Source of the DNA: Lepidodermella squamata
Taxonomy: Eukaryota; Animalia; Gastrotricha
DNA length: 64,000 nucleotides
Direction of reading: 5' to 3'
Assembly (NCBI GenBank): GCA_047495785.1
Contig: JBLDXI010000031.1
Coordinates: 868,001-932,000, forward strand
This document shows positions 10,380-64,000 of this stretch, one piece after another. Within the stretch, counting starts at the first letter, position 1. The number at the start of each line of letters is the position of its first letter. The notes beneath the pieces are model-generated. The model worked only from the letters and a program-made list of their open reading frames with translations. It did not search any database and was not told where the DNA came from. Made by a program: the position numbers and the translations under genes.

Positions 10380-10393
10380 AACGGTCTGACAAC

Positions 10394-24978: not shown

Positions 24979-25822
24979 CTTCTGTATTTTAGTTTTTTCT
25001 CTTTCCGATCAGACATCTTTGCTTTGGGAGCCATCTCTGCAGCTGGAGCCTTCGCTCTTGTTTTGATTGGTATTGGCGCTTGGCGTGTCTACACAAAAAG
25101 AAAGAAATCGAGATTCCCTAAGAAAAGGAAAATAATCGCCGGCGAAACGGAAATATTTCATTACATCACCCCCTATCGAGATTTCAAGGAAATGCTGGAG
25201 ATGGCACCCGAAGGTCGTGATATTGTTCCACAGATCGAAAATATTAACATTTATCCGAACTGGCTTGAGACAAACGAGTTAATTGGCCAAGGTTTCTTTG
25301 GCGCCATTCATAGGGGCATTTTGAGAAAACCAGGCTGCGAACCTCTTGCTATTGCTCGTTTGAGTATGATTCATGGAAAAAAGATCTCCTGGTGGATTAT
25401 TCCAAACAGATTTGCAGAGGAATGGTTTATCTGTCGTCACGCAATTGTCTTCACAGAGATTTGGCCTGTCGCAACATTTTGGTGTCGGACGATGAAGTTT
25501 TGAAGATTTCAGATTTCGGGCTGTCTCGGTTGGTTTCTGACGAGCACCTCTACTATAGATCAGGCGATATCAGCACCGCTATGATACCAACTCGATGGCA
25601 CCCGCCCGAGTCACTAAGTAGGCAGATTTTTCTACCTAAAGGAGATGTTTGGTCATTTGGCGTTGTTGTTTGGGAAATTTTCGGTTGTAAGTGTAACTTG
25701 ATTGAATTTTCCTGGCACGACTAAAGCCGGTGTTTTCAGTATGTCGTGAAACACCTTATGCTGGGCTCAACAATTTCGAGGTTATTGTCAACGTAAACAA
25801 TGGTTTACGTCCGAGCAAGCCA

Positions 25823-28617: not shown

Positions 28618-30477
28618 TATTCTCATAAAATTAGACCGATTTCATTTGTTCCAGTTGTCCTGAGTTATCGGAATTTTTTGCCGATTTCCGATAGTCGATA
28701 GGCCTGATCTAACATGAAACTGGCTGCCACTTCTCTACGATTTCATTGCTCAACGCCTTGGCAATTCTTCGGGTTTTTTCACAACTTGTAATCATTGTAT
28801 TTTGACTTTGAAAATCGCAACATCCCGGGGAGGGGCGGCGGGAGCTTCTGCCCGATTTTTTACATTGCTCTGATCTTAATAGGCCAATCGAATGAAAACG
28901 AGATCACGCCTGAGAAGATACACATTTATTCCATTCAATCTTAACACCCTCTTGTTCCCTCTTCCCTCTTGACGGAACCACACTTCTTATGCTTTGAAAT
29001 CGGTCCGTGATTGCTCAATGCCATTAATTCGATGAATTTAAAATAGAAAAAGTCAGGTTAACCGCGAAAAAATTATCGAAAACACATTTTTCATCATAAT
29101 TGTTTCAAATTTCATATCATTTTTCAAATAATTCCACGAATTTTAGGCGAAGCATGAGTTCTGAATTGAACACTGCATTATCAATGTTTGGCTGAATTTG
29201 CTGATGATTAATTCAGAAGTATGCTGGTAAATCTTGACCAAGGTGATTGATTTTTTAAGCTGTGATTTCAAATGAAATGTGTTTGCGAAATCGGACGAGC
29301 TGGGCATTTTTGAAGTAAATTGAAATAATGAGATTCGAGGTTTTTTATTCTGAGTTCGTTAACCCCAGGCAGGACTGAAACTCAGAGTAAAAAAACAATG
29401 CCAACCAGTCAAATCAAAACCGCCCTGGCAAATAAGAATAAAAACGTGGCGACGAACTTTTGATTCATAGTCGTCGCATTTACACGAGCTACTTCGTAAT
29501 TATCGATGTTAATTACTTCGGTTGTTGCGTCATCATTTTTACTTTAACTCGAGTGAGCGCTGTTTTCATTTGTGTGTGAAATTTTTATGGGCGCTGTGAA
29601 CATGTCACGGCAAGGCGATTTAAAACTCAAATTTTGCGGTATCAAGGAATAGCAACCACATTGTTGGCTGGTTTGTGATCTATGCAGTTCTCCTTCTGGA
29701 AAAATAGAATTCAAAATTCGATTTCAAAATTATAAAAATTCATAGATTTTGCCCAAATCCTCCAGCAAATAATTAAGCAACGAATCGCGTCACTGGGGCA
29801 GTTTCCAGCCACCCTGTAGGTATAGTAATACAGACAAATACAAATACTTGGAAAAAACGCAAAAAAATCAGAAAATATTGACAATTTCGAGGTTTTCTCA
29901 TGATTTTCGTGGTTTTCGTTGCGCGTTTCTTTTATAGTCCCAATACAAGCTTAAACTACATTGGATTTTCTAATATTTCCGGAATATCTTTTAGCGGAAC
30001 CAAAGTCGAAATATGCCAAGAGCCATTTTTTGAATATTTATACGAATTTTAGGCTAAGCATGAATTCTGAATTGAACGGTCCCCGTCTGATAGAGAATGT
30101 TGCGCTGAATTCACCGGTGAATTTTCTAGAATTATTGTGGCCAATCTTAACCTGCAATAAATATCCGAAAAGCGATTTCAGGCCACTAGAAAAGTCGAAA
30201 ATTTGGTTCCGCTACAGCATATTTGGTTCCGCTCACCGTAAATTTGGTTCCGCTAAAAGGAGGACCCTAATATTTCTATGAGAAAATTCTCCCTAAATTA
30301 GCACTGTATTCTTCAAAATTGAAACAAAAAATTAAGAGTGAATCCTGGATCTCCTGACGCCGATGCACACTTAAATGAACATGGGCGTAGGACACGTTTT
30401 CAAAAGTTTGGCGATAATTCTTGAAATAATTAATGGCGGTCTACATTTACCGAATTCTAATGATTTACCAAAAACAT

Positions 30478-30577
30478 TGCTCCAGGCGAGGCTCGAACTC
30501 GCGACCTTCGCATAACTCAGCGTACAATCAAGTACTGCTTATAAGTACGACGCACTAACCAACTATGCAACTGGAGC
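30478..30577 (-). tRNA. tRNA-Ile(TAT) with intron, copy 2
   Basis: Identical 100 nt to copy 1. Confidence 0.95.
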
Positions 30578-37529: not shown

Positions 37530-40500
37530 ATGTTTCGCCATATGGCTTCTTCAAATGCTCTACTCTTGCTTCAGGTTTGCTCATGTTATTCTGAGCTGAT
37601 CGATCCTCTGTTATTCCTGCCATTCGACCGTCAATCACAGACGAGCGACATAAGCCGCAGATCCAGGAAGCTGAGCAACGAACCTCTAGTCCTATCGAAA
37701 ACAATCGCTGGCCCTTTCGGATACCTTCAAACATCGGCTAGCGTTGCATTCACATCAGTTGCGATCGGCCTATACGAACTGCCAACCACGCAACAACCAG
37801 ATTACAGTATTTGCTTGTTTTTCCTTTTCGACTCATTAGAGTCAAAAGATCTTAAGGAATTTGGCGTATTCAGCTACGAAAGATTGGACTGGAATCTAAG
37901 CGTGTCCCTCAATCTAACGAACCAAAAGCTTTCTCTTGCAACATCGGACAGCTGGCCAAACGCTTTGTGGGAAAGCCGTTCCTTGAGCAGAGGGAAGTAC
38001 TACTTTCTTGGATTGTCTGCAATCAAAGGTTATGGCTTAAGCGTATCAATCAGTGAGGAGCCCGATTACACAGTGCTGGAGACTAACGGCCCTTTCCGAG
38101 TTCAAGATGCAGCGACTCAATTGAAGCCGAAGCTTCACATTGGCCGATCACCGTCCGGCTTGACGACTCAAGAGGTGTTTTCTTGCGTTTTAGCATATGA
38201 TGCTGGTCTTTCGAATGAGCAGTTTTTGGAGGTTATCGAACTATGCTCGAATAACCATGAAAACGCCTCCTTGAAACAACCAGGTATTTTATTTCAAAAT
38301 TTTCACAGAGATTTCGTATTAAATTTTACTTTCAGCAAATATATTTGGGACTTATTACATGCAAGACGAATGGCGTCCGTCACATGAAGTCAAGCCTAGT
38401 GGGAGCCGCTGGATATTGGACGATAAAGCGAGCAATGAGGTTCTGTTACCGTTGTTTGAAGTTTAAGGTCTGAGATTCAGTCCTTTCTTTCAATAGCTTT
38501 CGGCTCTATTCAAATCTGCTGGAATCCAACCCATGCTATTTTACATTGGAAGCATAAATATTTGGCCGTATAGCAGCAGTTGCGGTGCTCAAACTTGCAA
38601 CCGCGCAGCAGTCACATATCTTGCCCCGGTATATCTGCCCGTGAAATACGCTCAGAACATAACGGAAAGAATGCTTTGCCGCCAATTTGAAAAACAAATC
38701 GGCTCCAATAGTCTTAAAATTCTGTCTATCGGCTTGGGTAATGAATGCCTATCGTATCAAGTTTTCATTACGTTCCTTATCCCATTAAAGACATCCCGTT
38801 CAGGAAACCTTTCTCGCTGATCGCGCATTGGCCATTGAACAAAGCAAATGGACTGATTGATAGAGGACCACGTCGGCTTCGGGATGAGAAGCCCGCAGTT
38901 GCAGAGTATGTGAATGGACCTTTTGCTTCGAAAGAAACAGCGGTGAAGATAACTACATTTCTGCTGATCGTCGGAGAAGACTTATCACATCCCATCGATT
39001 CCGGTTATACTATCTCGTTTTTCCTCCGGAAATCACCCGAGAAGCAATATCGAACAATGCTGGAGCTGGCATCGTGGGATTTTAAGATTTGGGTTGATGA
39101 AAAGGCAGAAATCAACGTTCGCATTCAAGACAAAAAACATCAGCTAAAGTCACTCGCAATTGACAACGAATGGATTTTTCTAGCTTTTGTGAGTAACGTC
39201 CATGGCTTCTATGTGTACAACCTATTCGGCACTGTTTATCACAAGAAGGGAGCAAGCTTTTCACCTTTCGGTAGATTCGAAATGAAACTAAACGGGAATG
39301 GGCTTGATGCAATGGCTTGTCTATCAATCTATCGTGAACCTCTGGGGCCTGATGACTTGCTCCAGGTTTATGACGGTTGTCGGCAAGATATATCGAATCA
39401 ATTGTCTGGCCAAGCCAATATCGCGATCGGATTACCACCTACACCGTATCCCACGTTGTATGGAACTATGCCTGCAGATTCCGATCAGTTCCCATTCTTC
39501 AAAAAGATCGATTTCGGATATAAATCGTGCATTACAGCAATGTTAGACGAGCGGCACTACATATTGCCTCAAAGTTGTCTGAGCCTCCTATGTGGGGCTA
39601 TTTCATGGTCATTCAATATCCTCGGATCACAAAATGGGTTATCGATTGTCAGAATGGTTCATCCAAACGACATTGGCGAAGATGGACGTAATAACATCGG
39701 GCTATTCACGAAGCTAGCTGGTTTGGATCTCATATGGCATCATTACGTCTACGTTTTAGGCCACGAAAAGCCGAGAGAAAGTCAGCAAGTCGAATTTTCC
39801 GCGGATTTGGATTCCAATAACAAGATTGATTGCATCGATGAAAAAAGCTACCAATATTCTTCTGGTTTGATAACGGTGGATGAACCCGGCTGCGATAACG
39901 ATCTGTACCTTTGTTTCGTTCCAACTGTGGGCGAAAAATTCTCGGCCTGCAACCTGAGTGAAGGAGCCACGCTCTCGTTTGCTGCAACTGCCGACCTCGT
40001 AACACCAGTTTGGCCTCGTCTGCTCCTCGTAAGTTGGCTTTGAGCCCCCGGAAAATCTCATCAAATGCACCGAACATTATCTCACAGGCTGGCATGTATT
40101 TAAGAGAAGGCAATTGTGAATCAGCGAAATATGTGAAATTCGTCAATCTCATTCGATTGAACTATTGGATACAGCAAACGATCGCCTGCAGCTCGCTATC
40201 TGTAAGCGGCATGTCATGTCCAGGTGATTTGAGCGACACAACCGGAAATACTACACTTGACTTAGAGGAGGAGGAAGTGGAGGAAGAAAACTCTACGCTG
40301 GTCTTCACTCCGGTGAAAATAGAAATATCGACAAATAATCCAGAAATTCTAGCCTCCTCAACAGCTACGGCGATTATGGTTGTAGCGCCTGAGTCTGAGA
40401 TTCCGGGAGGTGATTTCCAAAATATTTTAGAGAATCTCAAAGGCTGAATTAATTCTTCTTCATTCAGGTAGGATCGCCCTCATAGTGGTCTCTACAACCG

Positions 40501-41625
40501 GAGCTATCGCTTTCGTCCTCGTCGGAGTGGCATTTTACTGCTTGTGTAGATTGCGAAGAAAGGCGAGAGCTTCGATGCAAAAAATGATAGACAAGAACCC
40601 CAGGAAATCTATGTACATCACTGCATTTTTCGATTTCCAGCAAATGCTCGAAATGACACCGGAAGGTCGAGATCTTGTTCCTCTCATCAAGGAACTTCAT
40701 ATTCAAAGCTGCTTGATAGAATGTGCCGATTTAGTAGGGCAGGGCTATTTCGGAGCTGTTCACAGAGGGGTCTTACGCAAGCCTGAATGCGACGCTGAGC
40801 TGGTCGCTCTTAAAACAATTCTTCCAGGGACCTGTAAAGACGTGGTTTCGTTTGTTCGGGAAGCCTTGCTGATGAAAGAGTTTGACCATGTAAACATCTT
40901 GCCTTTGATCGGAATTGCTTCGCTGGATGGCCAACCTAACATTGTGGTCCCATTCATGGAAAAAGGCAGCTTGAACCGCCATCTCAACTCTTTTGAGCCA
41001 GAATTATGGGAATATGAACAGCTCATCGACTTCGCTAAGCAAATTTGCCAGGGGATGGTTTACCTCTCATCACGTAACTGCCTCCACAGAGATCTGGCTT
41101 GCCGCAACATTTTGGTGTCTGACAATGAAGTTTTGAAAATCTCAGACTTCGGCTTGTCTCGCGTTGTCTCACCTGACCAGCTTTACTATCGATCAAGTGA
41201 TGTGGGTGCCTCTATGATACCGACCAGATGGTACCCGCCCGAGTCATTGTGCAGTCAAGTATTTTTGGCAAAAAGCGATGTTTGGTCTTACGGAGTTGTT
41301 GTTTGGGAAATCTTCTCGCGTGAGTTGTGAATTTCATTCGTTGTTGTTGTTGTTATCACTCTTTATTCCTCAGTTTGCAGGGAAGAGCCGTACGCGGGCT
41401 TGAACAACTTTGAAGTTATTGTACAAGTGTCAAATGGATTGAGGCTGAAGAAACCCGACATTTGTCCACATAAAATGTTTGATCGTGAACCATCATTTTC
41501 CTACATAGAAATTGTTAACATTTCTGTCTTCCAGTTACGAATCTGTCATCCTACCTTGTTGGCGTTGCCCAGAAACCGAACGCGCTTCATTCGCAGAGCT
41601 GGCTGAAATTCTTGGGAATAACTAG
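37530..41625 (+). CDS. Receptor tyrosine kinase copy 3, apparently intact, 8 exons
   Basis: All splice junctions in phase; signal peptide, two LamG-like domains, SEA-like module, pseudo-trypsin, TM (IVVSTTGAIAFVLVGVAFYCLC), kinase GQGYFG/ALK/HRDLACRN/DFG/DVWSYG, terminal CWRCPETER exon. Confidence 0.9.
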
Positions 41626-42643: not shown

Positions 42644-42743
42644 TGCTCCAGGCGAGGCTCGAACTCGCGACCTTCGCATAACTCAGCGTACAATCAAGTA
42701 CTGCTTATAAGTACGACGCACTAACCAACTATGCAACTGGAGC
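42644..42743 (-). tRNA. tRNA-Ile(TAT) with intron, copy 3
   Basis: Identical 100 nt to copies 1 and 2. Confidence 0.95.
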
Positions 42744-42965
42744 GGATGAACGACAAGCTCCTTAAATAAAATATGAATCAGTCAAACTTTTTACTTTTTC
42801 GATTTTTGAACAATTATTCAGCATATTATAAGGCATAGTTGCGTAGAATTATGAACAGTGATGATGTAGAGATCGACAATGATGAGGAGATTTTCTCGAA
42901 AATATTACAACAAAAATACAATAATGATTGTCCTAGATCTGCATAAAACAAAGAAATACTGTAAC

Positions 42966-44811
42966 CTATCTCTCTCCATAGTTGATCGAATCGAGATCTG
43001 AGCCGTTTTTTGATTGGGTACCTGCTGGTGAAGATGAGTTTCGATCTAGAGGAGACGAGCAACGTGCAAGTAAATTTCGCTCGAAAATCTTCGGCAACCG
43101 GTCTAGAATTGGATTGTTGTAGCAATATCTCTGCATGTACTGATCCCGAGTAATCGCTTTGTCTAAAATCAAAGAATAAAAAGACGCATCTCTGTAAATT
43201 TAATCCATTACCTAATATATAAGCCATCCCATCTATTCGAATCGTCACACCTCTTCGGCCAGACATACCGCCAAAAAGTAGGAAACTACCTGGAGATGCT
43301 CCTTCAGATCTGTCTTTTGAAAGAGACATTCCAGGTTTGACTCCGCTTGAAACAGTTGTAGTCGAACTTGCTGCTCCATCGTTGTGGTAATCCGAGGCGA
43401 GTTGGCCAATTTCAGTATCACCCATAGGAGTAGGAATCACGGACGAACTAACTGCGACGATATTTCTCGTAATTTCGTTCACCAGAACCACGTGGCCTGT
43501 AACTTGAGGCTGGTGCGATGAGTTTAACCTAGTTAGCTGGACATAACCCAGGTAATACTCATCGCGGAAAGGTAGGAACAAAGATGCGTCTCTAACTGCA
43601 AGTTGGGCTCCTCCTAGGTTGAAAGGTCGTGGTAACTGAGGCGCGACTGTAGTATCAAGCCTGCATTGAAGATACCTATCCGAACTTATCACCTGAGATT
43701 TTCCATTCACGAAAAAACACGCCAGAGTTTGAAGGGGTAGTACACTGAATACGAAATTGAGTTTTTGCTCACGTTTGCCTAACGTGACTACAACCCATGG
43801 TGTCCAAGTTGGCGCGATGAATTTCCAATTTTTCGAAACAAAAGCTGGTAACTTGATGACAACCCTCACATTTCGAGTTACGTCCCATAAATACGGGTAG
43901 TGCACTGTATCAGTTACAGCATCGACCGCTAATAAGGAGACATAAGGCTCGCCATTCAGTGTGAAAGCAGTTGGATGGGCTGGGTATAATTTAGACGTAG
44001 CAGCTTCCGGTATGCCAAGAAGCCTTCCGGAGTTTTCAACAGGATGCAGGGATGAAACGTCAAGCATAGTCGTGTAGACAAAACGATTCGCGGCGTTGTG
44101 TTCGTTTTCAGTCTGGTTCCTCGAGTCCTCATTAATCTCTCCGTCATAAGGCGACTGGAAAATATTTGAACGAGTGATTTGCAATGAGATCGCGCAGAAA
44201 GCCACGTTTTCGGATGAAGAACTCTTCGTCCCTACAAAGGAATACTCCATTGGCGCTACTAAATGAGCGCATGAGACCTTTTTGAGGCGGATTGATACCA
44301 ACAGTTGAGCTGCATCGTCGATCATTTGCCTAACATGGCGAGTGACGTAAGGCCCTAAAGAGCCAGCTTCTGATAAACCAATTATCGCATCCTGTTCATC
44401 CGGAGGTCCTGAAACACCTTGGGAACAGTCATCCGTGAAACTAGGTATCATTGCTAGGCAAACCAGATGGCGAGTTGCGTTTTCGAATGCGTAGTTCGGT
44501 ATGCCTCTAGGTAGGTTTGAGCGGTAAATAGGCGCGTTTTGTGACGAAGCACCGTCGAATAAATCGATAAGGGCTGATGATACAACGAAAACGATAAGGA
44601 TAACACCGGTACAACCGACCATAGCAATCACGCAGGGCGAGTCGGTTCGAGTCTGGCGGACTCGCATCATCCACTGCTGGCGGTAGGCTGCATCTGAGTC
44701 GTCGTAGGGTACTGTTGTAGGCTGAGGGCATGTTGCGGTCACATCTCGCGGAGTGAGTGGCGTAGATCGGAAGAACCTTCGATGGTTTTTATGGACGTTC
44801 AGAGTCGGCAT
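42966..44811 (-). CDS. Type II membrane protein, possibly a degenerate five-bladed beta-propeller / beta-1,2-mannosyltransferase (GT91)-like protein
   Basis: TM near the N-terminus; SKNWKF...FVFSVLPLQTLAC...C resembles EKNW.PF...FVYS..P..vL.C; a 49-bp intron at 43211-43163 gives a different C-terminus from the raw ORF. Confidence 0.55.
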
Positions 44812-46630
44812 AGTTTCTAAATTAAATGCGTCTAAAAACTGTACAAATATAGTGATTGAGGGCACTTGAAAGCAATCTATTTTTAGATGGATCGGAATTT
44901 ATTTATTCATTTATAACACCCAAGAGAAGGAAACTCGAAATAGTTTGAAATCGAACGGAAACATATGATTGCAGGACAGTTACAACGGACAAAGGCAAAT
45001 GCGTGCGGGATAGAAAAATTTGGAAAAATTCCAACTTAGCAAAAGATGAATCATGCACTTCGACCCAGCATGGCATGCTTGCTGAGAACTCAGATGGAAA
45101 ATAGGGAGCGAGTGGGAAGACAGAACTGGTTAGGGTAAGGAAAATCGACAAAAGAGTCCCTCCTTTGGTCTATGACTGAGTTCACCTTGCGGACCTCTTG
45201 AACAGGCAGGGAAGATCCCTACCATCCTAGCGTTACTTCGCTCTCTGCCTAAATCCTAACACTAGTGAGAGAATTCGAGAATCGTGAAGAATTCGCGTTG
45301 ATAAATCCGGCTGTGGAAGACTCTTTCAAGTACAGAAGGAAGTATTCAAATTTGGCAAATGCTCTCATCAATCCAATAATGTCCCATTCACAATAATCTA
45401 CCACAGAAAACTAGGTAAAGGCAGTCCCAATTCCAGGTAACCGAATAGACTTGTTGACGTTCGGCGTCTGAAATCGCCGGTGAAATGCGATGCGTGACGC
45501 ACAGGTGCAGCGGCTATTTTGTTATCACAACGAGAAATATCATAGCACGCGCGCATTTTTACGCGGATTAGCTGCCCAATCACTTGCGTGAGCGGCTACT
45601 CGAGTGAAATAACACAATTGCGCACGCGTATATTTAGCAATAAATAGCTCTCTCAAGCCGTCGTCCGTCGTTGGTATCATCGCGACAACAAAACATATGC
45701 ATCTTGTTTTTTAGCTGCAAAAATGCTAAATTGTTGCGCGATTATTTTTCGCGCGCACCACATACTCTCGGCATCATTAATATAATATTATGCCACTGAA
45801 GCGCTCGCATGCGCATGTGAGTGATATTTATCCGATAATATACCTTCGTTGATGATTAAGGCGGTCCCACTGGGAGATAAGCGCGTGCGTTTTGATTCAA
45901 TAAAATTTTGTGGCGACTAAATAGCCGCTCGTTGCGTTATTAGCATCTGCCGCGAATTGATAGGCCTCTATTAACAAAATTATTATTATTTTATTTCAGC
46001 TGCCCGCTGTGCGATTTCACAAGAGCGTTATTAGTAGTGACGCGCCGTGCCGTGGCGCTCTATATAATAAATTAGCGCGGGGATGAAATGCTGAAAATAA
46101 TATTTTCACATTTTATGCGCATAACAGTAGTAGTTGGTCAGCTTATTTTTTTCTTGAGATTTTCTCGCACTTCATTTCAAGTATTGACTTAACGAGCAAT
46201 ATCGCACGCAGTGCAAGTTATGATTATTAATTCCGGTGTGGGCTGCTGAAAACTTGAATTAAAAATTATAATTGCTTGAGTAAATAAGGGATTATGTATA
46301 TGAAAAAATGATGAAGCGGAAGTTTGTTTACTTCCAGCGACGTTAGGACAATGTCTGGCGTTGCATTGTTGGCGGGTGGTTACGATGGAAATTCTTGAAC
46401 TTTGAGTCTGAGGGAATAGATCGAACTGTACTTAATTCTGCAAAACAACGGTGGGAAATAAGGGTCGAAAGCCTAAACCGCTTTATTAATCAAGTCAATC
46501 ATAGCAAGCTCGTAAAATTCTTTGGTGACTGACCTTTGATCTTACGATACTAATGATGAAAAGCAAAAGCCACATCTTGAATAATATCATGGTAAATCGC
46601 TGCTACTTCCTGTGGGAATATTGGTTAAAA

Positions 46631-49690: not shown

Positions 49691-50911
49691 TTATGCTATT
49701 ACAGGATAGCTAGGGAAGCTGAGTATGCCGCACAAGTTCGAACCTCGAGCCATGCGAATATAACCCTGCTCGCCCCACCCAGTTCCCCAGCTGTTCTTGA
49801 CTAGCCAATAGTTCTTCCCAGTTGCAGCATCCGTTCCGTAGCCAACAACCAAAACACCATGATTCACACTAGTCGTGCAAGCTGCATCGTAATACACCCC
49901 ACTCGAGTAGTAAATGAATGACTTGAGACTAGCATCGATAGCAACAGAAACCGGTCCAGTTTGAAGGGCCTGCATCAACGCCGTTTCACTGTTTGCCTGA
50001 ACAGTGAAAATCGACGAAACCGGGGCGAATCTTGCAGAAGTAGCGTTGTTGAATTTGCAACTTTTACTGCTAGTCGCGGTGTATGGGTAAGCAGTGTCTG
50101 TATTGAGGCCACCAACAGACTTAGCATAACTAAACGCGTCATCCATCCAGCCCCCATCGCAAGCTTGGTTTCCGAATGACCAAGAGCAGTCCATGAGATT
50201 TTGCTGGGATAGCGAAACTAAATTGCCGTACTTAATCTTATAGCGACCTTCGAGGGCTCCTGCAGCTGTGAAACTCCAGCACGAGCCGCAGTTTCCCTGA
50301 TCTTTGATTGAAGATACAGCTCCGCTTGTTCTCCAGTCCAAACTAGTACCAGAATTTGTAGTAGTGGTTGTCGCTTTCGCCGTAGTAGTAGTGGTCGTTG
50401 CAACTTTCGTCGTAGTTGTCGTAGTACTAGCCTTCGGTGTGGTAGTAGTAGTGGTTGTCGCTTTAGTTGTAGTCGTGGTTGAAGTAGGTTTCGTGGTAGT
50501 TTTTGTGGTAGTAGTCGTTGCTTTAGTTGTAGTAGTAGTCTTGAAATTGAAAGTCGCTCCGACTAAGGTTTTCTCAACAGGCACTTTCAGGCCGAGTCGA
50601 GTCCTGATTTCATCTTCAGTTCGATCTGCAAATTGATTCAACCCAAGCTTGAAAGTTTCGTTGCCTTTCTTGTTATGATCGTCGATGAAGCTCTGGCGCT
50701 GTTTGAAAATATCGTTTCTTTGCCTTTCCTCAGATGTATCCTTGTATGAAGGCTTGTTCTTTCCCTTCCAATTATCCCAATCTGAATCAGCGGGAGCAGC
50801 CACTAGAAAAGGAATAAGTAGTGAAGAAAAAATATTGGATATTACTGGCTTACCACTAAGAGAAATCAGGCCGGCTGATAGAATGAAGAATCCAGAACTT
50901 TTGTAAAACAT
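49691..50911 (-). CDS. Cathepsin L-like papain-family cysteine protease A with Thr/Lys-rich linker
   Basis: I29 prodomain (ERQRNDIF...LGLNQFAD), QGNCGSCW, NHG, KNSWG; short in-frame intron after the signal peptide. Confidence 0.95.
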   Translation of the reverse strand: MFYKSSGFFILSAGLISLSGKPVISNIFSSLLIPFLVAAPADSDWDNWKGKNKPSYKDTSEERQRNDIFKQRQSFIDDHNKKGNETFKLGLNQFADRTEDEIRTRLGLKVPVEKTLVGATFNFKTTTTTKATTTTTKTTTKPTSTTTTTKATTTTTTTPKASTTTTTTKVATTTTTTAKATTTTTNSGTSLDWRTSGAVSSIKDQGNCGSCWSFTAAGALEGRYKIKYGNLVSLSQQNLMDCSWSFGNQACDGGWMDDAFSYAKSVGGLNTDTAYPYTATSSKSCKFNNATSARFAPVSSIFTVQANSETALMQALQTGPVSVAIDASLKSFIYYSSGVYYDAACTTSVNHGVLVVGYGTDAATGKNYWLVKNSWGTGWGEQGYIRMARGSNLCGILSFPSYPVIA

Positions 50912-51641: not shown

Positions 51642-52772
51642 CTAAGCAATCACAGGGTAGCTGGCATAGCTGAGGATGGCGCATAGATTGGAACCACGAG
51701 CCATGCGGATGTAACCGTTCTCGCCCCACCACGCACCCCAGCTGTTCTTAACCAGCCAATAATTCTGCCCAGTCGCAGCATCAGTCCCATAGCCAACAAC
51801 CAGAACGCCATGGTTGATATCCGTCGTACAAGCTGCGTCATTATAGACGCCACCAGAGTAGTACCAAAACGACTCCTGGCCAGCGTCGATTGCAACAGAG
51901 ACCGGTCCACTTTGAAGCGCCTGCATCAACCCAGCTTCTGTCGCTTGGACGTTCACGATAGATGACACAGACGCGAATCTCGCCGAAGTGGCGTTGCTGA
52001 ACAAACAAGTTTGACTGCTGACGGCTTTATAAGGATAAGCAGCGCCTGTATTGATTCCTCCGACCGATTTCGCATAATTGAACGCCGAATTCATCCAACC
52101 ACCGTCGCACGCATAGTTACCGAACGACCACGAGCAATCCATGAGATTTTGCTCGGAAAGGGATACCAAATTTCCGTACTTGAGCTTGTAACGGCCTTCC
52201 AGAGCTCCGGTGGCCGAAAACGCCCAGCACGAACCGCAGGAACCTTGATCTTTCACGCCGGAGACCACTCCACTAGTTCGCCAGTCCAAGAACGCGCCAG
52301 GGGCTGCGGTTGTTGTAGCTTTTGTGGTCGTGGTCGTGGCCTTTGTTGTCGTTGTGGTTACTTTGGTTGTTGTAGTCGTTTTGGGTTTCGTAGTTGTTGT
52401 AGTAGCTTTTTTGGTTGTCCTAGCGCCCACGAGCAAGTTGTCCCCAGGCAGCCTCAGACCAAGACGCAAACGGATTTCGTCGTCAGATTTATCAGCAAAG
52501 CGATTTAGGCCAAGTTTGAAGGTTGCGGATTCTTTCGCGTTGTGCTCTTCCACCAAATTCTTCCGGCGATTGAAGTTGTCGGCTCGAGTTCGTTCTTCGT
52601 TCGGGTTCGGGTAGGAAACCTTATTCGAAGCCTTCCAATTGTTGAATTCGCCATCGGCTGGAGCAGAGTCTGTAATAGAATGGAACTTATGATTAAGCTG
52701 AAGCGAGCAAACTATTCGCAACGTACCACATAAGGCAATGAAGCTCGATGCAATTAAGACAATTGTGAACAT
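51642..52772 (-). CDS. Cathepsin L-like cysteine protease B (tandem paralogue) with Thr/Lys-rich linker
   Basis: LGLNRFAD, QGSCGSCW, NHG, KNSWG; same intron position as copy A. Confidence 0.95.
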   Translation of the reverse strand: MFTIVLIASSFIALCGTLRIVCSLQLNHKFHSITDSAPADGEFNNWKASNKVSYPNPNEERTRADNFNRRKNLVEEHNAKESATFKLGLNRFADKSDDEIRLRLGLRLPGDNLLVGARTTKKATTTTTKPKTTTTTKVTTTTTKATTTTTKATTTAAPGAFLDWRTSGVVSGVKDQGSCGSCWAFSATGALEGRYKLKYGNLVSLSEQNLMDCSWSFGNYACDGGWMNSAFNYAKSVGGINTGAAYPYKAVSSQTCLFSNATSARFASVSSIVNVQATEAGLMQALQSGPVSVAIDAGQESFWYYSGGVYNDAACTTDINHGVLVVGYGTDAATGQNYWLVKNSWGAWWGENGYIRMARGSNLCAILSYASYPVIA

Positions 52773-53374
52773 TTTAGAAGCAAAAGGAGTCACTTTGGGA
52801 ATTGTTTTGAAGTTTGAAGGAGGATGATGAACTTCTCTCCCAAAGCGTAATCATTATATAGCCGAAATGTTGGCAACTCCTATGTGTTTACATCGTTTTG
52901 GCTGTTCGATTTAAGCCAAGAAAACATGTTTTCGCCGTTCGTCGATGACGCAGGTATAGCAGGCCTTTGACATAATCCAGAATTTGTTTCTGTTATTCCG
53001 CTTTCATACATTTCAACATTAAAATTCTGCCGTTACGGTAACAACTATGACGTAGACGTGTGCTTGAAACAAAAAACTGTTACCACTTTTTTACTGACGC
53101 ACGTTTTCAATGCTGTATTATCCGTCTATTAAACACTTGTTTACACCTTGAAGCATTTTTTGTCTTGAGGAAATTCGTGGGAAAAACATCAGCTATCCCT
53201 TGGCAGGTTACGAATCCAAATGATTTCTGTTGACCTTGCCTATTTGGAAAATATGACCTCAATAGGTTTGAGACACATTGATTCTTAGCCATTTTATTGC
53301 TTCAAATAAATAGTTTCATAATTTTCACTGGTAATAAATTATTATGACGTTTTCAAGTTGAAGAGCTTGTATTA

Positions 53375-54668: not shown

Positions 54669-55789
54669 GCTATATCGAGAGATTCACACACCTTATACAA
54701 CTGTTAGCTGAATTGTGAATGAAATTTTTTTGAATTACTCGTCCGCTTTTCACCGGCTGGTCAGCACGAGCCGGATGCCGGACGCGTGATTTTTGTGTTC
54801 GCGTTATACTTTTGCACGTATCGTCCATGGCCTGATTTTTTTGAGCACGCGATTTTAATCAAAACAAATTTACTATTATTTCATTTTTTTTCTGGAAATT
54901 TCACAATTTTATCCAGAATTTCGCGAGTAATCGTGAAAAATCAAAGAAAACATTCATCATTTTTCACGGTGAGTGGAACCAAATTTAGGAATTTTCTAGT
55001 GGCCTGAAATCACTTTTAGGATATTTCTTGCGGGTAACGATTGACCACAATAATTCTAAAAAAATCTCCAGTACTTGCAGCATAAAATTCTCTATAAAAC
55101 AGTGTTTAAAACAGAACTGAAGCTTCGCCTAAAATTCGTAGAATTTCTCAAAAAGTGACTCTTAGCATATTTCGACTTTGGTTCCACTACAGCAAATTTT
55201 GGTCTGTTTTTTTTATTTTAAATATTTTCCAAATTATGATAAAAGTTTTTCCCACGAAATTCTTAATCTGACTGCGAAATGATTATTCGACTTCTCACTT
55301 CCCATTACAGCGAAAAAATGATAAAACCCCTGATTATTCCTGGGAACTGAATTTGGCCTCTAAAATATTTGAAAACCCGGTTTCAAACTCCCCCATCGAT
55401 CAAAAGAGCTACATCCACCGGGGTCGACATTTTACAAGGTAATTTTTTCGACGGGCTAAGTCAAAAGCATAGGAGCCAAGTCCGCACAAAAATGAATGTA
55501 TCGTAAATATTATTGGCAACAATTTTTGCAATATTATAACTTATATTCACGAGTGAACTTGTCCTATTAGTAAACGGTCTCGGAACTTCACGAATGAGCT
55601 CAAAATTCGCAATTGGCTTCATCAGGCTCCCTAATGGTGAAATAAAACATACAATTCCGAAAATCCGAGCTTTGAAAATGTGGCGGCCTCAGAGAATCGA
55701 ACTCGTGGCGGCCGCAAACCATGTTTTTTACGCGAAAAATAAAATAACCCATGTCCATTTTTACCTGTGTGGCACAAAAATTATGAAGG

Positions 55790-57930
55790 AAATTAAGGAA
55801 TTCTTCCCGGTGTTGAGGGCAGAACCGAGAATTCTGCCCGCTGAAAATGCCCGAGGGCGTAGCGGAGCGCAGCGAAGCGAAGCCCGAGGGTATTTTCAAG
55901 GGCTGAATTCGAGGTTTTGCCCGAGACACAAGGGAAGAGTTCCTGTTCCTTCCCAGTTGGTTATTTTCGTTAATCCGACACTCGGACGAGTGAAAATGGG
56001 GAATGGTGTATAGTGCGTATGAAAGATGACCGTTGTTAATAACGAAAATAAGAAATCCAGCTTAAAATTTGTAGCAAATTTTTTTTTTGAATTTTTTTTG
56101 TTCGTTGTTCATTTCCTTGTTTTATTATCAATTGAATATTGCGAATTTCCGTCGAATTTTCAATGGAGATCACTTTTGATATTGGCGACCTGGGCCTCGG
56201 TGCTCTCGCTGACGGCTCCGTGGAAGTGAAACAGCGCGAAGAATCCGATCCAATTCGACTTCTCGAACGAGAACTTGATGCTGATATCGAAGAAGAAGAA
56301 TCCGATGAAGAGGGTGATACGTCGGAGTTCATTCAAGAAGTCGAAAATTTCGTGGCTGGTTTTGAAGCAAACGGCACAGCTCAGAAAACCAAGCAGCACT
56401 GGAGCCGATTTGTCGCATTTGTCGAGCAGCGATTCCACATTTCGGAGCAACTATTAGTTGAACTTACGGTCAAGGATATGGATCTCTATGTCGCTCTTTT
56501 TCTCAAGCAGTTGACGAAGACTGATGGTAGCGCGATGGAGCCGACAACGATTCGAGGCATTTATTCCTCCATCATTCGCCATCTCCGCGATGTGACGAAG
56601 AACGAAATCAACTTCACCATGGCGAGAGTCGATTTCTTCTATAGCATGAAAATGCTGAAATCCAAGTTTGTCGAATCTAAGCGTGCTGGAAAGGGAAATA
56701 AAGCCCGAGCATCTGAATGCCTAGAACGAGAAGATATTGATAAAATGCGTGAGGCGAAAACGCTGACTGATGACACGCCAATCGGTTTGATCACGATGCT
56801 GTGGCTGGTTTTCACCGTGTATTTCGGTCTTCGTGGCCGTGATGAACATCTACAAATGAAGTAGGTTGTTGGATTGCCATTGAAAAATTGTTAAATTGGC
56901 CGTTTTCAGGTTTGGTGATGTCCAGCTAAAAACCGAATCTGGAGGTCGCAGGTATCTCGAATTCAACGAGCGACAGACTAAAACCAGGAATGGCGAATCA
57001 ACCCACTCAAAACTGGCACCACGAGCATACGAGAACGGTGGCTTTTTCTGCCCGGTTCGATTGTTCCTTATTTTTTGTGCAAAACGACCGGGAAAGTTTT
57101 CGCGCCCGAGTGACCCAATGTATGTTGGTTGCCTGACCCGATTTCGACCCGACGGCCTCTTCTACAAATGCCAAAATTTGGGCAAGAACCCCCTTGGATC
57201 GCTCCTCAAGGACGCCGCTGTCGGTGCTGGTATTACCAAACGAATCACGAACCACTCGGCTCGAAAGTTTCTCGTCTCAACCCTCTCTGAACTCGGTGTC
57301 GATTCTCGAAAGATCATCCAGATTACTGGTCATGCATCGGTCGATTCTCTGAACAGTTACCACAAACTCAACACCTCTGAACGACGAAGTATCAGCGACA
57401 AACTGGCTGTCGGTTTCGGTGATGGACAATCAGCTGCAGTTTCGGGTGTGTCTGCACAAGAGATCAAGCCAACCGAAGGATTGGTGGTGGCCGAGTCGCA
57501 TTTCTCGCAAACGCTGCTGCTTCGAAACGTCGAAAATGACCCGCGCGATGAGCCACCCGTAAAGCAAGCTAAACCCATGCCGATCTTCAATTTCTCGAAT
57601 TGCTCCGTCGTTATTAACAATTAATCCGGCCCAAACACTTGTTTTAAAGTTTAAACATTCTAATAAAGGTTATTCACTTGTTCACTCGTTTGGTCAGAGT
57701 CTGAAGGTTGTAGTAAAGGGACTGGGAACGGAAATTGAAGTTGTGCAACATTATTTCAGGTGAGAGGTTTTCCCGAATTTTCGATAGCATCAATTGATTT
57801 TCGAAAATAAAAAATCCACCCTAATTGTTTGAGCGGGCAGAAACAGCGGGCAGAAACATCGGGCAGAATCACTTTTTCCGTCTAGGCAAAAAATAACCAA
57901 CTGGGCAGGAACAGATTACGCCATTCGAAA
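55790..57930 (+). mobile_element. Crypton (tyrosine-recombinase) DNA transposon; outer boundaries approximate
   Basis: YR gene flanked by 25-bp inverted repeats (55943-55967 / 57890-57914, 1 mismatch), a GC-rich hairpin at about 55815-55925 and gggcagaa repeats on both sides. Confidence 0.75.
56163..57624 (+). CDS. Crypton tyrosine recombinase, 2 exons (56163-56860, 56910-57624), 470 aa
   Basis: FGLRGRDEH (R), ERQTKT (K), TNHSAR (H-x-x-R), TGHAS..SLNSY (H, Y); a 49-bp GT-AG intron joins MK-FGDV. Confidence 0.9.
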
Positions 57931-58338: not shown

Positions 58339-61300
58339 TTAACACGAAAATGACGCTGCTCCATGCCTATCTAGGGTGCCATCATTCGGCTTGCATGGCG
58401 GCTTGACGACGTTAAGCGTCGGACCGTCTCCTAAATATCAAGCAATTATGATTATAGCGAGGAAAACCCAAAATCATATCATACTTGGATTGTTTGCGCT
58501 GAAAAGGGTGGCAATATCGCCCTGTATCGAAACTTTGATCATTTCACCACCGCTGTTATAACCCCCTGATTGGGCCGTTCTCAGGTTCTCAGCCGTCGGG
58601 AGGCCCATCCATGCGTTGAACACAATTTTCGAATCGAGCCCCGGCGCGTCAATATTTGCCGCGATATTGCCGCCAAGCGAATGGCCAGTTGCGACAATTT
58701 TATAGCCGGCAGGTTTGTAAGCAGCTACAACATCTTTGACCAGCTGGTTCGCTTTGCCCTGCGTAAATGGTGTAACGCCAGCAAAGCCAGTAATAGTATC
58801 CTTTACAACGTCCAGCAAGTTGTCCGTACCACGGAAAACCACATTTGCCGTCTTTGTCGCTGTATCGATGACTACAATCGCTTCTCCGTTCGGCATAACG
58901 TTGCTCAGCTTCGTATCAAGTTTCTCATTGGGCTGAAGTTGACCGGCAACCTCTTTCAGGTCCTTAATATAAGGTAGTTGGACCAAGCGACCAGTATTGT
59001 CGATTCTGCCTTTAGTTTGAGTGTCCAACGTATTGTAGGCACGAGCATTATTCTGCGTTAGAATGCTTTGAATCGTGCCGAGAGGTACGTTTCGAAAACT
59101 GAAACCACTTGATACTTCGTTGGATTCAAGGACTGCGTTCGCATCGCTGTTCAAAGGACCGTTTACTGATGCATTTTGTCCGATTTGATTCAGCAAAGGC
59201 CCGGACCCTATGACTGAGCCGCGCGCCACGCCGCTGTAATCTGACGAACGAAAACTTCCTGAAACAGGCTTCGCGGGATCCTTCCAGCCAGGTAGCCCAA
59301 TGCTTGCTGAATCTCCTGAACTACTAGCCACTACGTTATGACTGTTGATCTGGTCGACTGTGAAAGCTGGACCTTCAAATTGAACAACAGCGCCGGTAAG
59401 ATTCAATGTTCCAATGTGCAAGCCACGTGCTCCCCCTGAGCCGATTACGAACGAGCTTTGTGAGTTCAGTCGAGTGCCGCTGTTTTCAGAGACACCGCCA
59501 GAAACAGCCCCGCTTGTTGAGAAACCAAAAGATCGCGAAGTTGAGTCAAACGAACCGAGCAGTGTTTCCATGCTTACGTTTCGAAGATTCCCGGATACTG
59601 ATTCAGCATAAATATTGAACCCACGAGCTTCGAAAGTGTCAACGTTGACGAAGCCAACAGATTTGCGAAAGATACCCAGCGCATTATCGACAACAGAAGA
59701 CTTCGACGAGGAACTGGAAGCGGAACCGGATGCTCCCAAGATGCCGCCCGGGCCTAATAGGACTGAAGCCTGAAAGCTAGACGCCGATTGGGAAGCGCCG
59801 AGATGCGCCCCTTCAATGACAAATCGTCTAACATTGAAAACAGCGTCGTCTGCAACAATCGTAGCAGCGTTAAGCCACGAAAAACTATCAGCTATAACTT
59901 CAAGTTCTCCAACAACAATCTTCATTGTTCTAGCCGATGTTTGCCAGTCAATTGAAACATCGCTTTTCCCATATCCAACGCTAACTGAGGGAGTCGGATT
60001 TCGCAACGTTGCGATTGCTGAGTACGAAGCTAATGCAGTTTCGGTCAGCTTGTCACTATTGGCCCATGTCTGAGCGTTATTGATTAGAGAACCGACTATC
60101 GGTATGCTGACGAGAAGACCGCGGTCATGCTGCTCAAAGTGATGCTGCAAGATTCGGTCTGCAATCACAACTTCAGGGGCACTGATGATAAGCTTTCCAG
60201 CGATAGCAATCGACGTTCCGATCATTGAAATTTTTCCATTCTCTGATCTGATGATCGAAATTGCGTTAGAGTCGCCGCATCTGATGACTGAAGGAACCGA
60301 GCCCACCGGAACAACAGATGAGGACCTTGACGAGCCGCCGAAAAAGGACTCCCTTTCCTTTTCCTCGCGAACTAATACTACAATGTCACGAAAGTTCGCG
60401 TCGTTGTTACTGAAAAGCTGCAAGCCCTGTTGACCATTGAGCACTGATGCGGTCGATGCCATTGAAAGCGACTGCACGCGAATCAGGCCTTTGTAAGAGC
60501 GAAAGCAAAACACAGAAGCTGTAAGCTAAGTATTGCCGTTTATTAGCAAAGAAACAGTTAATATTACAATTAAAATAACATAAGCGAAACAAGGGTTTAT
60601 ATATTACAATGGAATGTTCTAGAATCGGAAGTTTCTGGAAGGTTCGAGAACTTGCTGGGTTCTGGCAGGTTCGAGAACGCGGAAGTTTCTGGAAACTTCT
60701 CGACCGCCGATACTACAGGGTCGCGTGGTCCTGACAGCCTTGTTCGGAAGTGACATAACTTCTCTCGACATGCGTCTCATAAAAATGGTTTGTTTTATCG
60801 TTTCCCCAGAAGTCTGTTTTGTCCCAACGTTCAGTTAACCACTCAAAGGAGTCGGCGGCAAACACCGCCGCACCACGTGGACATTTTATGATAACGTCGT
60901 AGCGAGCTCGGATATCGCCACACCATACGTTGACACCACCATTGGTGGACTCAATATACAAGTCGAGCTTCCGAGAATTGTCTTCTGTCCAATTCCCATT
61001 ACGATTCAATATGCGAGCTTCGTAACTGAAACCGTCCGCCGCTCGCAAACTGGCTCGATTATAGGCATATGGTTTTGCGTAACGCGTTACGTCACGTTTT
61101 CGCCGCTTCCCGGCGAAGATTTTTAAGGATTCAATTTTGACGTCTCCTGAAGCCCCAAGGACGATCTGCTTAGCCGCAATTGACGAGGCCCCAACAGATA
61201 TCGTTGAGGTTTCGCTCGTGACTATAACAGACGCGCCTTGAGCCGACACACTACTGGCACCGTTGATCAGCGTTGCCATGGTAGCTCCCAGGCCAATTTC

Positions 61301-64000
61301 AAAGGCTTGCAAACTACTTCTCGATAAAGTTAATGCCCCAGTTGAATTCACGATAATTGCACCTGCGGCTCGTACAGTTGCTGTTGTCATCTCAATCGAG
61401 CCATTCTCGGCGATCAGTTGAAGATCGCCTTCTGCAGACGAAACTGTTGTAGATCGAATAGAAATTGTTTGAACTTTGACAAACAGACTTCCTTGAATCA
61501 TTAATGGCGTATCAATCACAGCTTTAAAGTCAGAAATTACTACAGAAAGCAGTTTTTTAATCGCTGGAACCTTCTTTTGCAAATTGTTAGCCAAGAATCG
61601 ACTCAGGGATTGAACAGGTTCCCCTTGGCGCAATGTTCCATCACGGGAACAACAGTAATAGGCTGGTATTTTTGTTTCAATAAATAGTTCACCAAACCGA
61701 GACCGATCAGGATCAAGAGCCATCAATAGAGAATTCGATCTAATCCATGTCGCATTTTCAACGGTAGCGAAGCTCATTCCCTGAATCTCAGTCATTCCTA
61801 ACCCGACGAAGCAGATTGGTTCAAGGATTAAGTTATTGCCAACTGCCAGATTTCTCGCCTCAATCGGATATGCCTCAACGAGCGAATAGCGAACTTCGCA
61901 TACTGAGGCCGTTTTGAACGACGGCCCTGTAACCTTGATGATCATATCGCGGGCCGCCGTGCATCCATGAGCTTCGATCGAATTGTTGGCGATTAAGATC
62001 AAGTCAACAAGGCTTTCGACATTCCGAGCACTAATATAAGTGGCATTCATGAAAATAGAGCCGCCTGTAGTTATATTTATCCCAGAGACCGATCTGGGTG
62101 TTGAAATCGAGGAAATTCCGTTTGTAGATAGGCCTTCGGCCGTGATCGAATCCGATGCAGAACGTAATAAAAGGCGGTTAATACCATAGAGGTTGAACGC
62201 TGAAATGTTCATGTTGGCTTCAATTTCCAGAGAAAAGTTTCCAAGGGCATTCGGATTCCTCCACTCCTGCGAAATCTCAAACTTTGATTTGATGGTTTTC
62301 AAGTGTTCATTCATTTTGAGGTCGCAAAAGAAGCCGCAATTTGATACTGTCACAACGCTTGTCCAGCTCTGTAGCGACAAATCGTTAGCTAACCGTAATT
62401 GCCCGATTTTGATTTCACCAAAAGATTTTATGACAGTAGTATGATTCTGCTCGGAGAATGCGGTAGCATTTGCAATCAGAATTCCTCCAGCTTCAACAGA
62501 TGCGCATTTAAGCACGCTGCCTATTGTCAAGTTCCCTTGAACCGTTACAGAAATGTTTTCGGCGAGCAAAATATCACTCCGTAAATGGCTGCCCGCCGAA
62601 ATCCGCAGAGAATTATTTCCATATAAGCGCTGTTGAGCCGTGATGACTAATTTCGACGAACACTCAACTGTTGTAAAAGCTGACTCGCCTTGATCAAAAT
62701 CAATGCCGTTGCCTGTTTCAAAGAAACAGCTGTCACTGGTCAACATCGGCAGGGCGAGTTGAATAGAGCTCATGTTCGAAATGGCAAGTGTGTTAGTCTT
62801 GAGTGAGGAAAACGATTTCCCATGTAGGTAAACGCCATAGCACTCGAACGGTGATTTGATGACAAGAGATTTAACAAGAATTTTGACTGAATTCAACTCG
62901 ATGTGCATACCATATGTACTCGAGTTGTACACTGAGGGAAAGTCCGAACCGGAATCCGGCCCCTCTAAGATAACTTCGGATTCTGGAGCTATGAAATCCG
63001 AAATAAAGTTGAACTTCCAGCTCTGGAGAATAATTCTTTTAGGTTGTATGGAAAATGAAGCGTCAATGTTCAAAGTGGCGTTGTTCAGTGATCTTACAAC
63101 AACAGTATCCGTGACAGCGAAGTCTCCGGTGAAATTGACGTCCTTCTCCTTAGCAAGTTCCAGCTGAAGCCTGATTGCGGATATGGAACCATTGCCTGAG
63201 GCTAAATAGGTACCTGCAGCAATGAAGATATCATTCGCTCGAAGTAATCCTCGATTTCTCACTGCTTCGGAGGCTCCAATAACAAGTGCCGATTCATCCG
63301 CTGCTATTTCAGCGTCTATTCCATTGTCGAGCTCAATTCCAGCAGAAATGGTTACCAGATGCGGTTTAATCAAACGAGTTTTGGGTCTGAGGACGATAGC
63401 TTTATTGTAATTTTCTCGCTTAGTATTTAAATTTACCTGTTCACAACGGAACCCTTTGCAGTTTTGAGTATTAGTGAAGATGCGTTGGGATGATTCAGCT
63501 GAGAAGGGAGTTCAAACGATAAATTCTGGCCTGACATTACGATCCGGTTAATGCCTAGCTTGCTGTAGCCTTCAATTACCGCCTTGAAATCAACCATCGA
63601 AGTTTGCCGACGTTTACGAACACGCTGATTCACGACGCCGAAAGTTATGTTTCCATCTACCGTTTCAACGTATATTTCGAAGCCATTCGCTACAACATCA
63701 GCAACTGCTCCTTTAACTGACTTTTTGTTTGCATCAATTACCACGCCTATTGCGATGCTGGCGATTAACAATGCTGATATAATTACTCCAGCAGCGATGA
63801 GAATTTTCGTGGTGCGATTTTGGGTGCATCGCTTGCTATGGCCGTCGAGGGGTGGCGTAGTGGATGAACTATGAGGAACGTGATACATTGCCTCCCGCGA
63901 TGTTTTAGGTTTCCTAGTTCCAAGCTCTGCCACTTGCAGTTTCCTCATGTCGCTCCTAGGCGCTACATCGTTGCTCCGGTTGATGCGATCGTCGGGCCCA
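58339..64000 (-). CDS. CdiA/filamentous-haemagglutinin-like protein with C-terminal lipase domain and N-terminal type II TM anchor, at least 1751 aa; interrupted by a solo LTR
   Basis: Introns 63436-63387 and 58484-58431 plus removal of the 60492-60736 insert join three ORFs in frame; haemagglutinin-repeat-like strands; VVFRGTD, GHSLGG, FNA, GDIA, DRHG; frame still open at the window edge. Confidence 0.8.
60492..60736 (-). mobile_element. Solo LTR (245 bp)
   Basis: TG...CA termini, 5-bp TSD GCCTT (60487-60491 / 60737-60741), minus-strand TATA-like and AATAAA signals. Confidence 0.9.

Follow-up and report, generated by a model that had tools for sequence, protein, structure and literature searches.

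An interrupted gastrotrich gene joining a bacterial-type FHA-2 module and a candidate lipase tip to a predicted membrane anchor

The analysed window (64,000 nucleotides (nt) of contig JBLDXI010000031.1, assembly GCA_047495785.1, positions 868,001 to 932,000, from the gastrotrich Lepidodermella squamata) carries at one edge a long gene whose predicted product combines a membrane anchor, a module of the bacterial filamentous hemagglutinin (FHA) kind and a terminal lipase. As judged from the list of open reading frames (ORFs) and their translations, the part of the gene visible in the window spans positions 58339-63948 of the minus strand and comprises three long ORFs in series, followed by a last exon of 30 codons and broken by one interruption. 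ORF 1 (63948-63433, minus strand) starts with an ATG and encodes 171 amino acids (aa), ORF 2 (63373-60713, minus strand) encodes 886 aa, and ORF 3 (60513-58474, minus strand) encodes 679 aa; the coding pieces to which they belong are numbered accordingly (pieces 1 to 3). This serial arrangement had been described in a first-pass annotation made from the sequence alone, which left the strand unstated, and all the motifs quoted there are present in the translations of the three ORFs. The predicted protein, with at least about 1,750 residues, is plausible in size.

The first visible exon (piece 1, 63437-63948, minus strand) is predicted to encode a cytoplasmic N-terminus of about 48 aa, a signal-anchor helix and an ectodomain stretch of about 100 aa, and it matched no family in the Pfam profile search. 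The predicted transmembrane helix (piece 1 aa 49-71, 63736-63804, minus strand; 23 residues, Kyte-Doolittle maximum of 2.85 in a 19-residue window) is the only strongly hydrophobic segment of the gene, the values elsewhere staying at or below 1.6. Since about 48 residues precede the helix and no signal peptide is present, the segment fits a type II signal anchor, as had been proposed. Both of the basic furin-type sites noticed earlier were located: the first (piece 1 aa 109-114, 63607-63624, minus strand) lies about 40 aa outside the membrane helix, and the second (piece 2 aa 756-760, 61094-61108, minus strand) stands opposite gaps on the bacterial side of a weak profile alignment, as if it had been added in the host.

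The front of piece 2 (aa 1-640, 61454-63386, minus strand) is rich in Ser, Ala, Ile and Leu and has no detectable relative; piece 2 as a whole carries 19 N-glycosylation sequons and showed no detectable internal repeat. The hydrophobic autocorrelation of aa 1-640 at lags of 18-22 residues did not exceed z = 1.7 (i.e., no beta-helix periodicity), whereas the stalks of the bacterial relatives introduced below have a periodicity of 18-19 residues (z of 5.0 and 3.9). As these roughly 640 residues match nothing, a stalk is unproven there, and the suggestion that the middle of the protein is of FHA type stands, weakly, for the rear of piece 2 (aa 641-886, 60716-61453, minus strand), where a hemagglutinin-like region begins. 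In direct Pfam searches this rear part drew Fil_haemagg_2 (14.8 bits, E 0.031, cut-off 22) and DUF3739 (E 0.11), the only families listed for it and both of the filamentous-hemagglutinin kind.

Evidence on ancestry comes from piece 3, whose residues 4-397 (59323-60504, minus strand) form a beta-sheet module of FHA-2 type (related to PF13332, the family that corresponds to the FHA-2 region of CdiA; PMC5371414). An exhaustive phmmer search against 1.84 billion representative proteins, with piece 3 as the only query, returned just 10 matches (six small bacterial lipases and four long proteins), none of them above 42% identity. The four long proteins (P0001, P0002, P0003 and P0007) align to piece 3 aa 160-397 (phmmer E 1.6e-6 to 1.3e-4), and the part of P0002 and of P0003 that takes part in the alignment is the one assigned to the Pfam family Fil_haemagg_2 (E 5.5e-18 and 1.4e-8, respectively). 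In a profile-profile comparison (hhalign) residues 4-397 matched the relatives with a probability of 99.5 and an E of 4.2e-22; against a profile of five full-length bacterial relatives (A5) they matched columns 1768-2198 (E 2.4e-18), while the end of piece 2 (aa 836-879) matched columns 1729-1773 (E 0.055). The end of piece 2 (aa 831-879 when both profile comparisons are considered) and the start of piece 3 (aa 4 onward) thus abut in the relatives' profile, which indicates that they are parts of a single gene. With a shortened profile, piece 2 obtained a match score of 28.5, as compared with 16.2 +/- 2.4 (maximum 25.0) in 100 shuffles, none of which (0/100) reached its score or its position. 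On this sequence evidence the rear half of the protein is homologous to the FHA-2 regions of bacterial hemagglutinin-repeat proteins, so that the FHA/CdiA likeness noted earlier for the C-proximal part is borne out at the level of profiles.

The bacterial relatives are giant proteins. P0002 (MFN7096695.1, annotated as 'hemagglutinin repeat-containing protein' and recovered from a Gammaproteobacteria metagenome-assembled genome (MAG)) also contains Lipase_3, and the collinearity of P0001 (2068 aa) and P0012 (2041 aa) with piece 3 extends across the beta module into the lipase. All three have a terminal lipase that carries the FRGT and GHSxG motifs, hence the layout of an FHA-2-type region followed by a lipase exists in bacteria, as had been supposed. 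The C-termini of P0003, P0011 and P0013 are unrelated to these lipases, from which we conclude that the tips are polymorphic; the relatives thus combine a long conserved region with variable C-terminal domains, as polymorphic toxins do (sensu Zhang et al. 2012). They are encoded in compact bacterial loci (two in Gammaproteobacteria MAGs), one of which, in a Gammaproteobacteria MAG, has AnmK, GGDEF and YihY genes as neighbours. Ankyrin genes lie beside the giant gene in several loci (L001 and L002 have them, one being fused to RNase III), and a small unannotated ORF follows each giant gene after 15-22 nt in L005, L007, L001 and L002 (127 aa; 176 aa, then 169 and 209 aa). In L001 and L004 the proteins encoded upstream of the giant gene show no relation to one another, i.e., no conserved partner was found there. 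In L005 (giant-gene locus 7350-18148; that of L007 is 3246-11171) an 880-aa protein with a weak Macro-domain match ends 9 nt before the giant gene. A tblastn search of plasmids with the beta module found nothing, pattern scans of GTDB genomes for P0001 and P0012 found no relative, and pieces 2 and 3 had no match in a homologue search whose length window leaves out full-length kin.

An AlphaFold2 (AF2) model of piece 3, built on a 13-row alignment, reached a mean predicted local distance difference test score (pLDDT) of 69.5, with 85-96 over aa 20-135 and 180-440 (a single-sequence run gave 30.6). The modelled beta module consists of hairpins with strands of 15-23 residues, a length that points to a large sheet and not to the short rungs of a beta-helix. 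For the FHA-2 region of CdiA a large beta-sheet has likewise been predicted and proposed to enter the outer membrane of the target cell (PMC13625785), and the model obtained here fits that prediction. The beta-helical stalk first envisaged is therefore replaced, in the homologous part, by long predicted beta-hairpins in a large sheet. A linker (piece 3 aa 398-540, 58894-59322, minus strand) of low model confidence and with no family match joins the module to the lipase.

The main part of the lipase domain (piece 3 aa 541-676, 58485-58893, minus strand) contains an FRGT motif, a nucleophile elbow (58669-58686) and a candidate Asp motif. The assignment made earlier was upheld by Pfam narrowly above the cut-offs (Lipase_3 with 23.2 bits against 22, Mbeg1-like with 21.7 bits against 21.1) and by matches to fungal lipases in the PDB (E 1.1e-3); as to an alpha/beta-hydrolase fold, this part is truncated in the model and has a pLDDT of 50-78, and Foldseek returned local matches to fungal class-3 lipases (probability 0.9-0.95, E>0.5). 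The lipase motifs align with the ten relatives, and the GxSxG elbow (piece 3 aa 610-615) is in register with the GHSxG of nine lipase-bearing relatives. The candidate Asp aligns with the Asp of the stand-alone lipases, while the candidate catalytic His is found only in the separate last exon (58339-58430, minus strand; about 30 codons plus a stop codon at 58339-58341), which was recovered where it had been anticipated. It lies about 34 residues past the Asp motif, the His of related lipases lying 22-58 residues past theirs. The tip is thus a lipase of the class-3/Mbeg1 type and, as far as its motifs reveal, apparently catalytically intact, with a candidate Ser-Asp-His triad. In the alignment column of the candidate Asp (alignment A4), P0001, P0012 and P0002 have Asn, and the window protein and six stand-alone lipases have Asp; the Asn of the bacterial giants could mean either that their triad Asp lies elsewhere or that their mechanism differs.

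Pieces 1 and 2, and piece 3 and the last exon, are separated by short AT-rich GT..AG stretches that we read as candidate introns. Candidate intron 1 (63387-63436, minus strand) measures 50 nt and the candidate last intron (58431-58484, minus strand) 54 nt, the lengths given for them before; each has a GC content of 0.30 (0.45-0.49 in the ORF pieces), keeps the frame and contains an in-frame stop. As a yardstick for host introns we used the three tyrosine-kinase paralogues of the window, which have identically placed GT..AG introns of 49-62 nt in common; hence 50-54 nt is a normal intron size for this host.

Pieces 2 and 3 are separated by about 0.2 kb (60514-60715, minus strand; bounds from the ORF list, with the stop codon of piece 2 included), and piece 2 runs into a stop at the edge of this stretch. 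It contains three 27-nt tandem repeats, and a TATA-like box and an AATAAA on the strand of the gene; when ten TG..CA pairs were tried, a single one proved to have an exact direct repeat of 5 nt at its flanks (delimiting an element of 245 nt), an outcome that a rough estimate puts at 1-5% by chance over the ten pairs. The solo long terminal repeat (LTR) postulated at this place is moderately supported: the LTR-like features and the one TG..CA pair with its 5-nt repeat agree with it, but the 64-kb window holds no second copy. More broadly, the stretch may be an LTR-like insertion or a long intron, possibly spliced out, as several frame-keeping GT..AG pairs span it.

Taken together, these features are, in our view, probably those of a nuclear eukaryotic gene that descends from a bacterial giant polymorphic-effector gene, that was refitted in the manner of the teneurins and whose present allele is interrupted. 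We infer an old transfer from a bacterium to a eukaryote, in keeping with the horizontal acquisition suggested before; the membrane anchor and the polybasic sites would have been added in the host. The resulting protein would have a single-pass type II anchor with a short cytoplasmic N-terminus and with the remainder outside the cell, namely about 750 sequon-rich residues without a family, some 640 FHA-2-homologous residues, a short linker and a class-3/Mbeg1-type serine lipase. The signal anchor would take the protein into the secretory pathway and display its C-terminus outward, a convertase cleaving about 40 residues from the membrane could shed the ectodomain, and the FHA-2-type sheet might engage a foreign membrane, be it that of bacteria, competitors or prey, on which the (phospho)lipase would then act. 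That the protein works today as a surface weapon (the FHA-2 sheet entering a Gram-negative outer, or other foreign, membrane, the phospholipase being carried in, and convertase cleavage arming or releasing it) we regard as unlikely, and an antibacterial role is conjecture.

Several observations weigh against this interpretation. At the 5' side, the frame upstream of the piece 1 ATG is open as far as the window edge, so that the true 5' end may lie beyond base 64000. The intron boundaries were read by eye and not predicted by a tool, and as the bacterial relatives have no introns the two short introns cannot be common to them; for both reasons they are called candidates. The front of piece 2 (aa 1-640) found no relative in profile, PDB sequence or homologue searches (PDB sequence searches with the whole of piece 2 and with the family profile were likewise without a match), the direct Pfam hemagglutinin matches fall below threshold in the rear of piece 2 and are absent from piece 3, and Foldseek found no significant solved counterpart in the PDB for the AF2 model. 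All the bacterial relatives are no more than 20-25% identical to the window protein, which points to no particular donor and leaves the direction of transfer to inference. The searches revealed neither an orthologue nor a paralogue, be it in a eukaryote, elsewhere in the window, or by pattern in the JGI metagenomes (pieces 3 and 2) and IMG/VR (piece 3). The lipase is closer to the stand-alone bacterial lipases (31-37% identity, about 50 bits) than to those of P0001, P0012 and P0002 (about 33 bits), hence the two modules may not have come in together; by analogy with polymorphic toxins, which exchange their tips, the lipase may have been exchanged before the transfer. Finally, the gene is interrupted once, by an insertion with an in-frame stop, and present-day function is uncertain for that reason.

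This last point gives rise to a competing account, in which the origin is bacterial and the present copy is a decaying pseudogene, the insertion cutting the lipase-bearing rear from the anchored front so that no full-length protein is made. The make-up of the interrupting stretch (the three repeats, the TATA-like box, the AATAAA and the 245-nt TG..CA element with its 5-nt repeat), its length (four times that of the introns seen in the window) and the stop of piece 2 at its very edge speak for such a relic, but the open frames of pieces 2 and 3 still extend over 886 and 679 codons with the lipase motifs intact, frame-keeping splicing across the stretch is possible, and the element has no second copy in the window. 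As both flanking ORFs are fully open, any inactivation would be recent, or else the stretch is spliced out; unless it is, the present allele may be a recently disabled copy. We hold a decayed copy to be possible though doubtful, and stress that it touches the present function only and does not contradict the origin proposed here.

The remaining alternatives concern the origin itself. A true CdiA or TpsA exoprotein that has an FHA-1 beta-helix as its stalk and was acquired entire, with nothing new except a leader, would account for the FHA-2-type homology, the weak DUF3739 and Fil_haemagg_2 signals of piece 2 and the toxin-at-tip layout, but too many hallmarks of such proteins failed to appear. 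In the visible gene no Haemagg_act (two-partner secretion (TPS)) domain was detected in any piece at E<=1 or in sub-pieces of pieces 2 and 3 at E<=10, there was no Pfam match to FHA-1 (Fil_haemagg) or to the pretoxin family PF04829, no VENN motif occurs in the translations, and piece 2 lacks a periodicity of 18-20 residues. Nothing resembling Omp85/cdiB or an immunity gene was seen among the window ORFs scanned, including those nearest the 3' end of the gene (the next ORFs downstream, on the other strand, are those of a Crypton-like recombinase, and the upstream side falls beyond the window), as the first-pass annotation had already remarked for the TPS domain, cdiB and the immunity gene. The closest relatives, too, are devoid of a signal peptide, of NPNL/NPNGI motifs and of a TPS domain, and no conserved TpsB-like transporter gene adjoins theirs. 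The assignment to the CdiA/two-partner-secretion class is accordingly not supported: the bacterial family has a module in common with CdiA but does not belong to two-partner secretion in the defined sense, and whole-gene descent from a true CdiA is very improbable. Less probable still is a eukaryotic membrane lipase or adhesin of the ordinary kind, inherited vertically and resembling bacterial proteins through its composition; it would explain why the front of piece 2 has no bacterial match, and low-complexity Ser/Gly-rich beta proteins can draw weak matches, but a profile match over about 390 columns (E 1e-18 to 1e-22) with conserved motifs in register, and the lack of any eukaryotic relative of piece 3 among the 1.84 billion representatives, are not what such a gene predicts. 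An assembly chimera or contamination, i.e., a bacterial contig stitched to eukaryotic DNA, is the least likely of all. The gene does lie at the window edge with only one flank in view, and its only detectable relatives are bacterial; against this, short AT-rich GT..AG stretches of host size, each with in-frame stops, divide the coding sequence, its third-position GC content (GC3, 0.456) matches that of the host ORFs (0.462), its relative synonymous codon usage (RSCU) correlates better with host genes (0.67) than with the bacterial relatives (0.32-0.53), the composition is even across the join in a window without N bases, and the bacterial relatives are only 20-25% identical. Host-sized introns and host-like codon usage thus argue against contamination and for a long residence of an integrated gene.

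Domesticated bacterial toxins offer several points of comparison for the descent from a bacterial effector that we favour. Teneurins, animal type II membrane proteins, derive from one complete bacterial polymorphic toxin gene (PMC3482391). They resemble the window protein in the type II anchor and the extracellular part of bacterial toxin origin, a likeness of design and not of family: teneurins have an Rhs/YD shell, EGF repeats and a tip of HNH type that is inactive, and they are of ancient date and found in all animals, whereas the window gene has an FHA-2-type module, an intact-looking tip and no other eukaryotic copy found, and its pieces have no Pfam match to Rhs/YD, EGF or Tox-GHH. Furin-type processing is known in teneurins. 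The tick dae genes, domesticated interbacterial effectors reused in animal defence, likewise represent bacterial antibacterial effector genes moved into animal genomes, but they encode small secreted amidases without a delivery module, and the window gene has a large delivery-type module that arrived with the enzyme or was joined to it. Type VI secretion (T6SS) Tle proteins and other secreted antibacterial phospholipases use a GxSxG lipase as a membrane-attacking effector; they are likened here by description only and follow a different delivery route. A large Rhs-like, bacterial polymorphic toxin-like gene has been reported in the assembly of the coral Stylophora pistillata, with introns in the gene models and the integration left open (PMC9111745); unlike it, the window gene has eukaryotic neighbours on the same 64 kb.

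With CdiA (E. coli EC93 type) the window protein shares an FHA-2 (PF13332)-related module placed just before the C-terminal toxin and having a large beta-sheet as its predicted fold, as well as (in the wider family) a polymorphic tip. The two differ in that the window protein is without the signal peptide and TPS domain, FHA-1, VENN, CdiB and CdiI, no receptor-binding or YP domains were recognised in it, and its tip is a lipase where that of CdiA is a nuclease or a pore-former. The bacterial giants (MFN7096695.1 and the Logan proteins P0001 and P0012) come closest: their FHA-2-type region is collinear and precedes a lipase in which FRGT and GHSxG occur, their long N-terminal region is poorly conserved, and they have no TPS domain; they depart from the window protein in being intron-less, in having neither a membrane anchor nor polybasic sites, in their small downstream ORFs and periodic stalks, in the Asn at the candidate Asp position, and in an identity no higher than that given above.

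Bacterial toxin parts are known already from eukaryotes (teneurins, dae amidases, deaminases), but in the literature searched we found no eukaryotic gene with an FHA-2-type module, and hence none in which such a module and an enzyme tip that looks intact are combined with a membrane anchor of the host. If expressed, the gene would show FHA-2 modules working outside two-partner secretion and would provide a fresh, datable case of a bacterial weapon refitted for the secretory pathway. Should the surface-weapon role hold, a eukaryote would possess a counterpart of contact-dependent inhibition, and a whole polymorphic toxin would have been captured in 'teneurin-type' fashion for a second, independent time, here with an enzyme that has stayed active. 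The analysis has also brought out a bacterial family of giant FHA-2-bearing proteins without signal peptide or TPS domain, encoded next to ankyrin genes in low-GC Gammaproteobacteria MAGs.

The surroundings of the gene within the same 64 kb, which add to the signs of integration in a eukaryote, comprise three tyrosine-kinase paralogues, two cathepsin-L-like genes, a piggyBac-type transposase, a Crypton-type recombinase and an ankyrin gene; no paralogue of the gene itself occurs elsewhere in the window. That an ORF at 42826-44865 has the same length as ORF 3 (679 aa) is a coincidence. The kinase paralogues (approximately 7262-8420, 25160-25830 and 40485-41480, plus strand) are 63-91% alike at the DNA level. 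The cathepsin-L-like genes (49691-50911 and 51642-52793, minus strand) are intron-less and arranged in tandem, each with a propeptide and a Peptidase_C1 domain, and have animal cathepsins S/L as best PDB matches (E 1e-72); the repetitive stretch between propeptide and protease is probably a Thr-rich linker, as read from the repeat DNA only.

The ankyrin ORF (15999-18422, minus strand, 807 aa) is built of 21 head-to-tail units of 102 nt that are 84-97% alike, and several frames of both strands are open through the array (e.g., 16068-18362, plus strand, 764 aa). Mobile elements are represented by the piggyBac-type transposase (4030-6031, plus strand, DDE_Tnp_1_7, two consecutive ORFs) and by the Crypton-like tyrosine recombinase (56139-57624, plus strand, DUF3504 and Phage_integrase, two ORFs), which lies 0.7 kb from the 3' end of the gene. 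Direct repeats of at least 300 nt (8992-9291 and 12249-12548, 100% identical, 3.26 kb apart) enclose an ORF without family match (9357-10379) and look like the two LTRs of a young element; they have no relation to the interrupting stretch of the gene. Three 100-nt Rfam transfer RNA (tRNA) matches with identical scores (51.9 bits; 15193-15292, 30478-30577 and 42644-42743, minus strand) lie in a dispersed repeat of 122 nt. Since ARAGORN detected no tRNA anywhere in the window, the matches may represent tRNA genes with introns or else a repeat derived from a tRNA. Two stretches (29983-30213 and 54972-55198, 25 kb apart) form inverted repeats of 95-129 nt that are about 80% complementary, probably two copies of a dispersed element.

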